From NCBI GenBank assembly GCA_964019335.1, contig OZ025710.1, positions 1-64,000 of the forward strand: 64,000 bases of DNA, written 5' to 3'. Both the position numbers and the translations under genes were made by a program. Position 1 is the stretch's first letter. Every line of letters starts with the position of its first letter. The stretch is from Diplonema japonicum (Eukaryota; Protista; Euglenozoa: Diplonemea). Shown piece by piece: positions 1 to 8,418 of the stretch. Under the pieces are notes generated by a model, which made no database searches, was not told the origin of the DNA, and saw nothing but the letters and a program-made list of their open reading frames with translations.

Positions 1-779
1 TTTGCGGGTTTGCGGGTTTGCGGGTTTGCGGGTTTGCGGGTTTGCGGGTTTGCGGGTTTGCGGGTTTGCGGGTTTGCGGGTTTGCGGGTTTGCGGGTTTG
101 CGGGTTTGCGGGTTTGCGGGTTTGCGGGTTTGCGGGTTTGCGGGTTTGCGGGTTTGCGGGTTTGCGGGTTTGCGGGTTTGCGGGTTTGCGGGTTTGCGGG
201 TTTGCGGGTTTGCGGGTTTGCGGGTTTGCGGGTTTGCGGGTTTGCGGGTTTGCGGGTTTGCGGGTTTGCGGGTTTGCGGGTTTGCGGGTTTGCGGGTTTG
301 CGGGTTTGCGGGTTTGCGGGTTTGCGGGTTTGCGGGTTTGCGGGTTTGCGGGTTTGCGGGTTTGCGGGTTTGCGGGTTTGCGGGTTTGCGGGTTTGCGGG
401 TTTGCGGGTTTGCGGGTTTGCGGGTTTGCGGGTTTGCGGGTTTGCGGGTTTGCGGGTTTGCGGGTTTGCGGGTTTGCGGGTTTGCGGGTTTGCGGGTTTG
501 CGGGTTTGCGGGTTTGCGGGTTTGCGGGTTTGCGGGTTTGCGGGTTTGCGGGTTTGCGGGTTTGCGGGTTTGCGGGTTTGCGGGTTTGCGGGTTTGCGGG
601 TTTGCGGGTTTGCGGGTTTGCGGGTTTGCGGGGTTTGCGGGGTTTGCGGGGTTTGCGGGGTTTGCGGGGTTTGCGGGTTTGCGGGTTTGCGGGTTTGCGG
701 GTTTGCGGGTTTGCGGGTTTGCGGGTTTGCGGGTTTGCGGGTTTGCGGGTTTGCGGGTTTGCGGGTTTGCGGGTTTGCG
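1..779 (+). repeat. Tandem array (TTTGCGGG)n, telomere-like composition; runs off the left window edge
   Basis: 78 perfect 8-mers (1-624), 5 variant 9-mers TTTGCGGGG (625-669), 13 more 8-mers (670-773), then partial TTTGCG (774-779) joined abruptly to unique sequence. Confidence 0.97.
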
Positions 780-981
780 CTCTCCTCTCCTTCCCTTCCT
801 TGTACTAACCTAGAAACCTTTACCCTTCCTACACTTCTGTTTACTTTTATTTCCGTTACACTTTTACACTTCTTCTAAATCTTTATACTCCGTTGAACCT
901 TGATGTCGCGTTCTCACTTCCAATATTTGTATTTTCTTTTCAAACCGTTGCTGTGTGAACTTTATTGGCACGGTCGGACAC

Positions 982-1019
982 CAATAAAGTACAGAAACTG
1001 TAGCTTTAGAATCGTTGGT
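982..1019 (-). other. Spliced-leader exon copy 1 (38 nt, first A absent)
   Basis: Minus strand reads ACCAACGATTCTAAAGCTACAGTTTCTGTACTTTATTG. The 3' half matches the conserved euglenozoan SL core CAGTTTCTGTACT.TATTG. The whole sequence is nearly identical to the 39-nt Diplonema SL as I recall it (AACCAACGATTTAAAAGCTACAGTTTCTGTACTTTATTG). Confidence 0.9.
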
Positions 1020-1094
1020 GGAAAAAAAAAAAGAAAAAGAAAAAATAGAAATAGTAGAGGGTCCAGAAAAAATGGGGGGCAGAGAGGGAGGAGC

Positions 1095-1370
1095 ACTACC
1101 TTCTCTCGGGCGCGCTGTCTCTCCCTCTGCCTTTTTTTCCTCCGAAGAGGGTCTGTTTTTCACCTCCGTGGAGGGTCCCTCTGGAGAGGGCTCTATAAAA
1201 GAAAAAGGGGGGGACAAGGGGGGGAGGAGCACCACCCTCTCTCGGGAGTGCCACCTCTTCCCCTTTCTCTCTATTTTCCTCCGAAGAGGGTCTGTTTTCC
1301 TCCGAAGAGGGTTCTAAAAAAAAAAGGGGGGCGGGTGGGGCACTATCCTCTCTCGGGAGTGCCACCCCCC
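1095..1370. repeat. Cluster of short imperfect direct repeats in the AlkB 3' region
   Basis: TTTTCCTCCGAAGAGGGT occurs three times (~1135, ~1274, ~1295). CTCTCTCGGGAGTGCCACC occurs twice (~1238, ~1348), with a related copy at ~1100. Confidence 0.8.
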
Positions 1371-2375
1371 CTTGCCCACAAAAAAGGGGATCTAAAAAAG
1401 AAGGGGGTTCGTCTGTTAACCCAGGGGATGGGTCTTCCTGGGGTGTGCGGGTGAGCTTGGGGCCTACCGCACGCAGGGTGATCGACACCCTGACACCAGT
1501 GGACATCCCGGACGGGATGTGGTGCGTCCACTGGTGTCTCGCTTCACCCTCCAACAATGCCCATGAGAAGGGGGGCACCAGGTATCTCGCCACCCTATCC
1601 CCCCTCCTCATGACCATTGTGGTCTCGGCTCCGTACGAGAGGACTAGGACAATCGGTCCCAGCCTCGCGTCGTCCTTGTGGGCGGCAATCCCACAACCAG
1701 ACTTGTACTTGTTGACAAGTACTGGTTGGGGACCACCTTGAGCCCTGCGGCGGCGGCCACCTCCCTCACCCACCCCTCCGCCCCCCCTGGGATCCCCGTG
1801 GTGGGGCGCACCTTGGCGTTCGTCCCCTCCCACCGGTACCCGTATTGGAGGGTCTCCCTCCCTGAGTTCCCAGACAGGGCCTCCCACTTTCCTGAAAGCA
1901 GGGCTTTCGGGAAGGCAAGGGCCGGGCCCGTCCTCAACCCGGGAGGGTGTTCACCATACACCAGTACCCACCCCTTTTTTTCTCCCTCTTTTCTTCCCTC
2001 TTCAACAATAGCAGGGTCGGCTGCAGGGGTCGTGGTCGCGGCGGTCGTGGCTGCGGCAGGGGCGGCTGCGGCGGTCTCAGTTGCGGCGATCAGGGCGGCA
2101 AGGTCGGCTGCGGCGTTCAGGGCGGCTGGGGCGGCCGTGGCTGTAGCAGCGGCGGTCAAAACCGCGGTCTCTGCTAGTGATTTTTTTATTTTATTATTTT
2201 TTTTTTCTAAAGGGGGGTGGGGGGATCTAGGGGGTGGGGGTGGGGATTCATACTGCCCAACCAGATTGCCTGGTTGGGTGGGTCTCGGCGCCGTGTGCTG
2301 CGGGCTGCGGGCTTGCTCCTGCGGGCTGCGGCTGCGGCTGCGGTCACCTCCTCCTGCGAGTCGTCTTGGATCCAT
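1096..2375 (-). pseudogene. AlkB-family 2OG-Fe(II) dioxygenase with one frameshift near 1720; SL-headed probable retrocopy
   Basis: ORF 1644..2447 supplies RETLQYGYRW...PNQ. ORF 1096..1887 supplies VLVNKY..GCGIAAHKDD (NxY, HxD), EARHQWTHHIP (distal His) and RVSITLR (RxxxTxR). Restoring one G at CAG(G)TA gives PNQVLVNKY. The first ATG (2375) is 69 nt downstream of SL copy 2. The frameshift could be a sequencing error. Confidence 0.85.
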
Positions 2376-2444
2376 TTTTTTTTTTTTTTTGTTTATTGTG
2401 TGTGTTGGGGGGGAGGGGATCCTTTCGTTGAGCGGCGGGCAGGC

Positions 2445-2482
2445 CAATAAAGTACAGAAACTGTAGCTTTAGAATCGTTGGT
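2445..2482 (-). other. Spliced-leader exon copy 2 (38 nt, first A absent)
   Basis: Identical to 982-1019. It is followed by GCCTGCC (not a GT donor), a short UTR and the AlkB ATG. Confidence 0.9.
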
Positions 2483-2901
2483 AAGAACTTGCCAAGAACT
2501 TGAACTGGGGCCCGGTCATCCCCTTGAGCTCACCCCTGCATATGTTGGCTTCGACCACGGTGCCATCCGCCCCCGTACCCTTCAGATAGATGTAGCCACC
2601 CTCCACACAATCCGAGTCAGTACTGGCCGATCGGGCCCGGGCCCGTTTCTTGTCCTTCTTGCTCCACTTCAGCTCTTCCAGGGTGGGGAGGTCCGTGGCA
2701 ACCACCTCAGGCCGCCTCTCCCTGTCTTCCTCCTTCTTCCGGGCCAACAGCCCAAGGTACCTCTCAAAGGAGACGTCCTCGAACAACCCCGGGACCGTCA
2801 CCACCGCTGACTGCAGGTTTTATTAATTTTTGAACTTTTTTTTTAATTTTCCTGGTCCAAAGAACCCGTTTTACCTGCAAACGGGGGTTAAATGCTGCCA
2901 T
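2483..2901 (-). pseudogene. Gene of unknown function, 3'-truncated by SL copy 2; possible 64-nt intron (2811-2874)
   Basis: ATG at 2901 gives MAAFNPRLQ. The AT-rich stretch CAG|GTAAAA...CCTGCAG|TCA splices in phase 0 onto ORF 2469..2804 (SAVVTVPGLFED...FKFLASS). The last codons of that ORF (YQRF*) are supplied by the SL sequence. Confidence 0.5.
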
Positions 2902-3558
2902 TTCCCCCCTCAAATTATGAAAAGGAGCAAAAAAGGGACCCCTATGTAGATAGGCCCCGGAGTTTTTTTTTAATGAGATAATGAATGTTTTTTTTTTTTT
3001 TTTTATTAAAAATATTTTAATTAAAACTAAGGTACAAGGTATAAAATAATGGTATAGAAAATATAGCAAAGGAAAATGGAAAAGGAAAAGGAAAGGTATA
3101 GATAGGTGCTGCCCAAAAAAAGAGGGGGAGTCGCACAAAAAGCTCCCTTAACTCCGAAGAGTGGGTGTTTTTTTTTTAGTCCAAGATATAGATTTTGATT
3201 TTGATGTGGTTAGCGTATGAAGGTTGTTTTAGTGCCTGCCAACATCAAAAACAAAAAGATACTTTGAATTAAAAAAAAACCTCTTTTCATTTTTTTGTTG
3301 TTGCTTTCTTTTTTTCGTTTTGTTTACTTTTTTTTTTCTACTTCGTATTCAGCAACGGTCACAACGAAAGCGGATACACAGCACAGGGGGGAACCACGCA
3401 CACACCAGCTACCTTACCCCCTCCGACCATCAAGGCTTACCAAGGACAGGGCGAATGGGTAACAGGGCCCGCTCTAAATCTAGCCCCGACAAGGTTCACA
3501 CACACACACACACACCACAGCTTGGGTACCTCTCACATTAGTTTCAGCCGAAGCTTAC

Positions 3559-3720
3559 TTACAGGGGACGCCACGTGAAGGCTGTGAGTTGGATTTTGTC
3601 CCCCCTGGAGCCCGAAGAACACCCATCGGGGATGTGGTGGGTACATTCATAGCGGGCCTCACCCTCCAGAACGGCCCAGGTGAAGGGAGGCACCAGGTAC
3701 TTCGATACCCTGGACCCCTT
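3559..3720 (-). pseudogene. Second AlkB fragment (C-terminal part only)
   Basis: Translates to KGSRVSKYLVPPFTWAVLEGEARYECTHHIPDG, which aligns without gaps to RGDRVARYLVPPFSWALLEGEARHQWTHHIPSG of the first copy. The HxD half is missing. Confidence 0.85.
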
Positions 3721-3798
3721 TGACGCTATGCTACTACCTTGTGCTGTGATAAAGGAGTCGGAGCCAGCAACAAAGAGGCGGATGGTGCGTCACATTTT

Positions 3799-6883: not shown

Positions 6884-8418
6884 CAAGCCCAGCATCACAT
6901 TTAACTGACGACAGAGTGGGGGGAGGGAGGGAGAGGGAGGTTGTCATAAATAAAATACTCTTGCTTCCCAATACAATACTGATGTGTCCCATCTCAAATG
7001 ACTGTCGTGGTTCGAATGCCGAATGGAGGATTTCGTATCATCCGATGAAAATAGAAAGACCTCACCCCTGCCTGGTTGTCGACACAAGAAGGAAAGGTGC
7101 AAAAGGAAGAAGAAAAGCAGGTAAATAGCGAGATAACAGTGTAAATGTAAGAGAATGGAACCTAACGGCATCGCCCAATCATCGGGCTAATTATACATCG
7201 GGTTTTGCGGGTCCTGGTAATAAAAAAGAATATATGAGTTAAAGGAAGTCTTTGTGAGACGCCCCCTTGTTCTCATCTCCTAAAGAGGATCGAGGCAAAT
7301 AGGTAAATACAACCCATATGAACATTGCATGTCTAAAAGGATGCCCGTTGTGTCTAGTGGTGAGGCTACGGCGCACGCTTTCACGTCCTTCAAGGAGCAC
7401 TGCTTCCCAGCGGGTGGTTACGCACATCGACGGCTGCACCAGGGTGGGGACATGCCTCGGCCAGCCCGCAGGTTTGAAGCCAGCATTCAACAACTGCTTC
7501 GGACCCTTGGTCGAGGAGCTGCTCCGTCATCACACTGAACACAAAATCACCCGATCCGCACCAGGTCGGCAGAAATCCCCTGCCCACGCTGCCGATCCGT
7601 GTTGCTCCTCGGTAGCACTAACAACCACGGCGAACGACAGTATTCCTGCGAACATTCCCCTCCTTCCTCCTTTTTTTCCTCAAACTGTGATGTGCTTAAA
7701 TGGAGATGAAGTGGATAAAAATAAAATGAAAGTAGAAATTGGAAGTAGGGAAGGGAGGAATGAGGAAGACAGATGAAGTGAAAGTAGAAATGAGGGGAGG
7801 GGGGATGGGGATGAGGAAGACAGAAAGTGAACAAAAAAAAGAAAAACGAAAGAAAATGCAAAGAAAAAGAAGAGAAGAGGAAAAGAGAGAAACCACCAGC
7901 TGCTCCACAAAGCTCCAATGTGAACAAACACACAAAAGGAAAAGAGTCTGGAACACCCTTTCTGTTGCCTGTATGTATACTCTGTGATAACAGCAGGTTT
8001 TTTGGTTTTCAAATAGTACTCTATTGTATTGTGCCCTTATTGTTTTGTGTACTCCTCTTTTCTTCTTCTTTTTTTTTCGCTTTTTTTTTTTCTTCCTTTT
8101 TGGATCTTTTGTAAAATACCCACATTGAAAACGGGGGCACAAAAGCTGTGAAAATAAAGGTTGAAAAAAGAAATTGTAACTTTGGTTCAAAGTCCGGATA
8201 AGTAGGGGAAGGGGGGGGGGGGTCAACAACATATTTTTATTTTTTTTACCTTTTTTTTTACCTAGGAAATCATATCATGCCTCTCACCCAAAACACAAAG
8301 GCTTCAAGGTGTTTTTACGCTGTTAATAAGTCAGCGGAAAGCATCCAAAATCAATTGGATACATAAGTCAAGAGGTCGAATCATGGACAAAAACATCACA
8401 CTTTGTCTTCTAGTAGTT

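Follow-up and report, generated by a model that had tools for sequence, protein, structure and literature searches.

The window analyzed in the present study is the first 64 kb of contig C63 (OZ025710.1) of the diplonemid Diplonema japonicum, and this report concerns its outermost end. We concluded that this end is probably an outermost subtelomere made of retrotransposon leftovers, which accumulated through insertion, terminal loss, and re-capping, and not of cellular mRNAs. A G-rich terminal array (positions 1-779) is followed by three pieces lying on the minus strand: the 5' end of a long interspersed nuclear element (LINE), here called LINE-2 (780-1019), and two pieces (1047-2482 and 2491-2818) of a large retrotransposon without long terminal repeats (non-LTR), hereafter the big element. 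The first two of these pieces are headed by the spliced leader (SL). Four features were directly observed and carry this conclusion: what the pieces are, the polarity common to them, the sequences at the junctions, and a 3' junction of the target-primed reverse transcription (TPRT) type, which occurs throughout the big-element family. The assembly used comprises 62.5 Mb in 132 contigs. The genome note of D. japonicum describes 62.30 Mb and 118 chromosome-scale molecules, curated and derived from HiFi and Hi-C data (PMC13598402). At the genome level, our junction statistics cover approximately 16 contig ends and 55 distinct SL copies (loci L001-L100).

By their alignments, the pieces 1047-2482 and 2491-2818 both belong to one SL-headed non-LTR retrotransposon family of 9.3-10.7 kb. 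A full copy of 9,330 nt was found at C9:622-9951. It holds a single open frame of 2884 aa, which runs on through the SL complement, and its Pfam domains are 2OG-FeII_Oxy_2 (5e-14), OTU (4e-12), and RVT_1 (2e-16). Behind the reverse transcriptase (RT), the motif C-x4-C-x10-H-x3-C-x6-RHD-x19-E-x10-RPAD-x15-D of a restriction-enzyme-like (REL) endonuclease was read in the translation, and the homologue consensus of this region is CPRC..H..C..RHN..E..RRPADV..D. The REL-endonuclease motif of SLACS, CRE, MoTeR, and FoTeR consists of C..C..H..C, RHD/N, E, R/KPD (RAD in MoTeR), and D/E (PMC12857005). The big element carries this motif, with some spacings slightly outside the published ranges (PMC12857005); a Pfam search for its REL domain returned no match. 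The RT is of the non-LTR type, and the nearest solved structures are R2 proteins. Among 448 homologues, the sole named protein in the top five is a D. papillatum protein annotated as SLACS (46% identity). This database name and the similarity ranks are indications that the big element may be placed in the SLACS/CRE/MoTeR clade of REL LINEs. The element ends in a short A-tail.

The piece at 1047-2482 (minus strand) consists of SL nt 2-39 (2444-2482) followed by element nt ~117-1494, and is cut on its 3' (distal) side. It is 91% identical to nt 117-1494 of the C9 element and is without the 77-nt leader segment of that copy. The minus strand of 1096-1887 encodes a 2OG-Fe(II)/AlkB-type domain, for which only the C-terminal half of the Pfam profile was matched. 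The open reading frame (ORF) of this domain is split over two frames by a frameshift near 1721, after which other copies have an extra C. The big-element copy at 1047-2482 is dead. The piece at 2491-2818 (minus strand) is a fragment of 328 nt (element nt 8085-8412) from the C-terminal coding region and is cut on both sides. It is 99.7% identical to at least 30 copies, in which its flanks form a continuous ORF. A separate subtelomeric gene of 574 aa (no Pfam match) was considered as the parent of this fragment and was rejected, since the fragment is the C-terminal part of the 2884-aa polyprotein. The private divergence is approximately 0.3% in each of the two big-element pieces. The 8-nt junction filler AAGAACTT (2483-2490, assigned to neither strand) lies between them and is a direct copy of 2495-2502; other copies continue differently at this place. 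The true unit boundaries are 1046/1047 and 2490/2491, and they replace the boundaries 1019/1020 and 2482/2483 that had been drawn in an earlier sequence-only reading of the window.

The sequence-only reading had proposed that capped cellular RNAs, an AlkB mRNA and another, were captured at the chromosome end. Its inventory was accurate: the analysis confirmed the G-rich array (96.8 copies), two SL complements (exact 39-mers), an AlkB domain (Pfam E=4e-8), and an ORF fragment (2491-2818). An SL in DNA beside an ORF with an AlkB domain speaks for such a capture, and the view of the SL-headed units as products of reverse transcription was supported by our results. However, all three pieces map onto two retrotransposon families. 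At least 100 places match the AlkB-domain piece, which is the N-terminal part of a retrotransposon polyprotein there; the longest open frame reaches 3005 aa. The proposed first RNA is a LINE 5' untranslated region (UTR). The unit at 1020-2482 is a fixed SL-flanked element with at least 40 copies at 91-97% identity. The SL-less parental loci that had been expected were not recovered: there is no near-identical AlkB parent, and the only internal AlkB-like matches, in cellular genes, are 29-34% identical. A relict-SL retrogene is recognized by an SL-less cellular parent with introns, and the close relatives found here are all SL-headed subtelomeric copies. Since the unit recurs as a fixed SL-flanked element and has no SL-less parent, two of the outcomes named beforehand as speaking against RNA capture were in fact observed. 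We consider the capture of cellular RNAs to be extremely improbable. What had been suspected to be an RNA-capture mechanism is the debris left by a retrotransposon system associated with telomeres.

By its alignments, the piece at 780-1019 (minus strand) is the 5'-terminal 240 nt of LINE-2, a LINE that is headed by the SL and encodes an apurinic/apyrimidinic endonuclease (APE) and an RT. In order, the piece contains SL nt 2-39 (981-1019), GT, a segment able to pair with the 3' end of the SL, and 5' UTR, and it is cut on its 3' (distal) side. Its identity to the LINE-2 5' ends on C91, C82, C52, C34, and C46, which run on into ORFs, is 87-90%. More than 20 loci show the order of the LINE-2 5' module (SL, GT, SL-3'-pairing segment, 5' UTR, ATG, and long ORFs). 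On C91, a full copy (L097) encodes Exo_endo_phos (3e-6) and RVT_1 (2.5e-19), which are the AP-endonuclease and RT domains of an APE-type LINE. The 5' end of L097 aligns with 773-1019 at 90% identity, and the piece in the window corresponds to LINE-2 nt 1-272.

Both sides of the LINE-2 piece are informative. On the proximal side, the filler at 1020-1046 (minus strand) reads CC and a T-rich tract in the sense orientation (GG and an A-rich run on the plus strand), which is a typical LINE-2 5' flank: more than 15 LINE-2 copies at unrelated internal loci have T-run 5' flanks (with CC or CA) similar to this one. The intact big element has no such tract at nt 1494. No poly(A) in the sense orientation was found at the junctions, as had been noted from the sequence, and the A-rich plus-strand run at 1022-1046 is T-rich in the sense of the units. 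On the distal side, the heptamer CGCAAAC (sense; 773-779, minus strand) is common to the LINE-2 5' UTR and the repeat phase and forms the junction between the array and the element. At this place, the window has ...gagagCGCAAACCCGCAAA..., whereas ...gagagCGCAAACaacaca... is present in five other LINE-2 copies. These relatives carry CGCAAAC natively; therefore, the array begins inside a native heptamer that matches the repeat, which gives a 7-nt microhomology at 779/780. Among the LINE-2 loci (L062-L086 and L097), a T-run was also noted after the 3' end, as ...CCTGTACTTTGAG(T)n in L097 and L012. Instead of carrying poly(A), LINE-2 appears to have a U/T tail and to use T/A tracts for integration.

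The 39-mer SL complement occurs exactly at 981-1019 and again at 2444-2482, against a chance expectation of 0. We take the 39-nt SL entry 'Euglenozoa 14' to be the Diplonema SL. The reverse complement of the 39-mer equals nt 2-39 of this entry, apart from 2 substitutions (PMC3795323). The 3' half of the SL is identical to that of the Leishmania SL. The genome contains 213 SL copies at 2 or fewer mismatches versus 0 for the reversed control. SL copies of the element type (52 distinct copies) mostly have SL nt 2 as their first base, and an A stands before it in only 8 of them; the A is present in 2 of the 3 gene-type copies, which have a conserved upstream region in common. In kinetoplastids, the first nucleotide of the cap-4 structure of the SL is base-methylated, which blocks RT. 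A cDNA that stopped at SL nt 2 would thus fit a capped RNA template. GT directly follows the SL in 42 of the 52 element-type copies; therefore, the element 5' modules resemble SL RNA genes rather than trans-spliced exons.

SL RNA genes with the conserved upstream region read SL+GTACCCAATC, which is also the commonest continuation of the SL in public read unitigs. We considered whether 780-1019 is itself an SL RNA gene, given the GT and the pairing segment after the SL. This was rejected because the same module leads into LINE ORFs at more than 20 loci whose upstream flanks are unrelated, and because the intron start of the genuine genes, GTACCCAATC, is a different one. An Rfam scan of the window, SL RNA models included, matched no family. 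Three loci (L072, L083, and L098 [C76:2340-2395]) carry a full SL and then a partial second SL starting after an internal AG. These joints read ..ACAG|TTTCTG.. or ..AAAG|CTACAG.., as would result from a second round of trans-splicing at a DNA-encoded SL, followed by retro-copying. AG-dependent trans-splicing was also considered for the variable distance between the SL and the leader (0, -21, +79, and +100 nt) and is unsupported for those variants; the shorter ones have no preceding AG in the longer ones.

The terminal array at 1-779 (plus strand), (TTTGCGGG)97, has a period of 8 with 99% matches and includes five 9-mer GGGGTTTGC variants near 625-669. The (TTTGCGGG)n array is the terminal repeat of the D. 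japonicum genome. It opens contigs C1, C2, C4, C5, C9, C21, C76, C84, C105, and C115, and its complement closes contigs C3, C11, C84, and C105. The 5' end of the G-rich strand is at the terminus in the window and in all of the approximately 16 contig ends examined; the strand with its 3' end at the terminus is CCCGCAAA, which is the opposite of canonical telomere polarity. This inverted polarity is a property of the assembly because reverse-complementing a contig leaves the polarity unchanged. Since the G strand has its 5' end at the terminus, there is no G-strand 3'-OH at the chromosome end, and priming from it needs an internal nick. A TERT-like frame is located on C41 (C41:533974-534300; Telomerase_RBD, 28.4 bits, in an open frame of 1086 aa). 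At other ends, the array on the 3'-ended strand most often begins GCAAACCC or CGCAAACCC. A telomerase RNA template of the UUUGCGGG type would account for C-strand addition at 779/780. We noted that the left array of C2 (L100, C2:1-2886) extends over 2.9 kb and is composed mainly of the 9-mer GGGGTTTGC, followed by a block of GGGTTTTGC; just a few canonical 8-mers are present, adjoining the subtelomere.

The polarity of the pieces in the window is shared by their families. Within 11 kb of left contig ends, SL complements are on the plus strand in 24 of 24 cases and AlkB matches on the minus strand in 44 of 45; therefore, the elements point their 3' ends at the terminus. The big element is located almost only at contig ends and in one orientation. 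The intact copy on C9 and the left end of C84 are identical in that T7, which complements the A-tail, directly follows the array and the 3' UTR comes next in antisense; variants of this junction occur at both ends of C105. We interpret the array-T7-3'UTR junction as the footprint of TPRT from a G-strand 3'-OH. In the manner of a telomere LINE, a constant 3' end is joined to the repeat in one strand orientation, although the ends counted may include duplicates. The sequence-only reading had suggested priming from the 3'-OH of the G-rich strand. This polarity held at the family level, where full copies show the array-T7 joint, but not at the terminus, where the G strand is 5'.

Short interstitial arrays lie proximal to SL-headed units on C9 (34 nt), C76 (~24 nt), and at one C20 locus, while repeat tracts are absent at the window junctions and at most other 5' flanks in the sample. 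Direct A6|SL head-to-tail joints and a tandem period of 10,659 bp exist in the big-element family. Both at contig ends and in unitigs from public runs of several studies, the joint with the terminal array falls at many different points of truncation in the same families. On C2, the breakpoint 2490/2491, with the same extra T, adjoins the 2.9-kb terminal array directly. The junctions 1046/1047 and 2818/2819 occur nowhere else in the assembly.

Several variants of the big element were noted. Its 3' UTR (L093, L096, L092, and L099:622-700) carries a variable number of tandem repeats of ~23-24 nt (AAAAAGGGGGACTTGAGAAAATAAAT, plus strand) before the A-tail. At the right end of C105, a T60 run and 17 extra bases lie between the 3' UTR and the array. 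L014 (C9:10675-11075) is an internally deleted big-element derivative of ~1 kb, in which the 3' region is fused to the 5' leader and the SL. Beyond L014 follow an SL, TGCACA, a partial SL, and the 34-nt array remnant; TGTGCA precedes two SLs at the C9 end. At the left end of C24 (G000:C24:7177-39116), SL complements recur every 10,659 bp, the AlkB family is at 71% identity, and the frames are of 3005 aa. The C24 repeats look like a head-to-tail tandem array of a second big-element family.

We propose the following course of events for the window, of which we infer the order and the separateness. The big element would insert by TPRT, primed where the G-rich strand of the terminal array is nicked. 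One copy may have left the 328-nt remnant at 2491-2818. A second big element would then have been joined to it through the 8-nt templated filler, and its SL-headed first ~1.5 kb (1047-2482) would have remained. A LINE-2 copy may have arrived next with its usual T-rich 5' flank, of which 780-1019 remains. Most of LINE-2 would finally have been lost, and new terminal repeats seeded at the CGCAAAC heptamer. The SL ends of the units are intact and their terminus-facing sides are cut, which therefore fits repeated terminal loss followed by new addition. However, several points weigh against this course. Serial insertion into an array should often leave a telomere-repeat remnant, and there is none at 1019/1020 or 2482/2483; only ~3 of 14 distinct big-element 5' flanks have one. 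The two big-element pieces could be of one age because their private divergence is similar. Furthermore, LINE-2 forms the outermost piece and is without a close relative (best 88-90%); this is unexpected if the outermost piece is the youngest.

Some of these points speak for a single run of an RT that jumped between templates. A G-strand 3'-OH would anneal to the CGCAAAC of a LINE-2 RNA, and the RT would copy this RNA to SL nt 2 and jump on. It would land either on a truncated big-element RNA, at its 3' end, or on the 3' overhang of the chromosome itself, copy up to the next SL, and jump once more; the chimeric cDNA would bring its own array. The 7-nt microhomology at 779/780 could have served such priming. 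This predicts pieces that have an intact SL end, lack their 3' side, and lie in a single orientation, as in the window. The short fillers (GG and the A-rich run; AAGAACTT) and the junctions without repeat remnants agree with it, as does the finding that the two big-element pieces have diverged privately to a similar degree. End-to-end jumping would also yield the A6|SL head-to-tail joints and the 10,659-bp period of the family. Template jumps by R2-type RTs in vitro were reportedly found by Bibillo and Eickbush. L1 chimeric retrocopies (U6-L1) and the 'continuous cDNA on non-continuous templates' of R2 are similar to the window in having head-to-tail pieces in one orientation, each complete at the RNA 5' end. 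However, known jumps land on template 3' ends, whereas the landing points in the window are internal (element nt 1494 and 8412); these internal joins could mark where broken RNAs, or an eroded chromosome strand, had their 3' ends. A further difference is that a single flanking target duplication is undefinable at a chromosome end. In addition, the T-rich 5' flank of LINE-2 is an ordinary integration footprint at unrelated loci, the array placed directly on the 2490/2491 breakpoint of C2 suggests a healed-end intermediate, and repeat remnants between units are kept at other chromosome ends. We regard template jumping as unlikely, while taking it seriously.

Another possibility is that no RT acted at the window junctions and that subtelomeric repeats were shuffled as DNA through break-induced replication, ectopic recombination, or end joining. 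Every component is a multi-copy subtelomeric repeat, the segment at 2971-3390 is common to the C3 subtelomere, and the 2490/2491 breakpoint is common to C2. The filler AAGAACTT is a templated duplication such as those at microhomology-mediated end joints. However, both distal partners begin exactly at SL nt 2, where the RNA-defined unit has its 5' end, and random breakage and joining would rarely produce such a start twice. End joining would not predict the uniform polarity, and shuffled blocks are difficult to reconcile with the junctions 1046/1047 and 2818/2819, which are private to the window. Shuffling at the DNA level is improbable in our view.

An assembly or library chimera at the contig end was also weighed. 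The region consists of repeats, and among Logan unitigs, which break at repeats, none bridges the three junctions of the window; these junctions are without long-read confirmation, and this also weighs against the course of insertion and loss proposed above. However, the same architecture is present at the independently assembled ends of C2, C5, C9, C76, C84, C105, and C115, and many kinds of array-to-element joints occur in unitigs from the runs of several studies. The assembly is, moreover, HiFi-based and curated (PMC13598402). A chimera is very improbable.

We speculate, with considerable doubt, that chromosome ends in this organism may be built and repaired by a telomere-primed retrotransposon system acting on a telomere of inverted polarity, and that the window may be the fossil of a multi-template healing event. 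If so, a nicked G strand would prime cDNA on SL-capped element RNAs, and the RT would string templates together or jump to an eroded 3' end. Broken ends would thereby gain a ready-made cap, and a telomerase with a G-rich template would extend the C-rich 3' strand. The junction data of the window (repeat addition seeded at 7 nt, an 8-nt filler copied from nearby sequence, and units that start at SL nt 2) may inform how chromosome ends erode and are rebuilt.

Two groups of elements resembling the big element are already known: telomere-targeting REL LINEs (MoTeR, FoTeR, and Cnl1) and SL-associated REL LINEs (SLACS/CRE). MoTeR1 of Magnaporthe, the FoTeRs of Fusarium, and Cnl1 of Cryptococcus belong to the SLACS/CRE clade (PMC12857005). 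Similar to them, the big element has a single large ORF in which the RT is followed by a CCHC..RHD..E..R(P)AD..D/E REL domain, and it resides at chromosome ends in one orientation with many truncated copies and sometimes repeat tracts between them. FoTeR and MoTeR 3' ends are followed by TAACCC (PMC12857005), which is the same relation of element to repeat strand as in the big element and implies G-strand TPRT. Unlike in MoTeR and FoTeR, the 3' end of the big element, not its 5' end, faces the terminus because the terminal array itself is inverted. The big element also differs from all three in that its copies start with the SL, AlkB and OTU domains are added, the polyprotein is ~2.5 times longer, and most 5' flanks are without repeat remnants.

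SLACS, CZAR, CRE1, and CRE2 of trypanosomatids are, similar to the big element, euglenozoan REL-type LINEs tied to the SL. Their insertion site is in SL RNA genes, where the SL exon is interrupted between nt 11 and 12. In contrast, the whole SL from nt 2 is the big element's own 5' end, and its target is the terminal repeat. As far as the literature searched shows, the big element is the first telomere-targeting REL-type LINE described in Euglenozoa, and its combination of SL-headed copies, an AlkB-OTU-RT-REL polyprotein, and 3' ends facing an array of inverted polarity is a new one. Slamovits and Keeling are said to have described relict-SL retrogenes in dinoflagellates in 2008. In both cases, a DNA-encoded SL proves an RNA intermediate, and the partial second SL after an internal AG in L072, L083, and on C76 is a further likeness. 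However, dispersed cellular mRNAs are concerned in dinoflagellates and retrotransposon RNAs at chromosome ends in D. japonicum.

The Bombyx elements SART1 and TRAS1 also make strand-specific target-primed insertions into telomeric arrays that are kept alongside telomerase-type repeats (PMC7265360). However, they are of the APE type, use a fixed nucleotide of TTAGG, and are without SL and without AlkB or OTU domains (PMC7265360). In the literature searched, no paper joined AlkB, OTU, and 'non-LTR retrotransposon', none concerned diplonemid telomeres, and a search with the octamer gave nothing relevant. The genome note of D. japonicum has no text on telomeres or such repeats (PMC13598402), and the D. 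papillatum paper mentions only SLACS-like RT annotations.

The context proximal to these pieces (2819-3390, minus strand) consists of 150 nt of AT-rich sequence followed by a 420-nt segment with an A19 run. This segment (2971-3390) is 96% identical to a segment of the C3 right subtelomere, which lies just upstream of another SL-headed unit. Further inward, an AlkB-domain fragment at 3601-3744 (minus strand) belongs to a diverged big-element family in the same orientation (56% protein identity; 74% DNA identity to element nt 946-1035). Across the genome, at least 150 RVT_1 matches were scored among 625 candidates, many of them in intact frames of 1,430-2,036 aa with identical scores. These frames cluster in internal blocks (C52:97-256 kb, C51, and C61), and several LINE families look to have been recently active.

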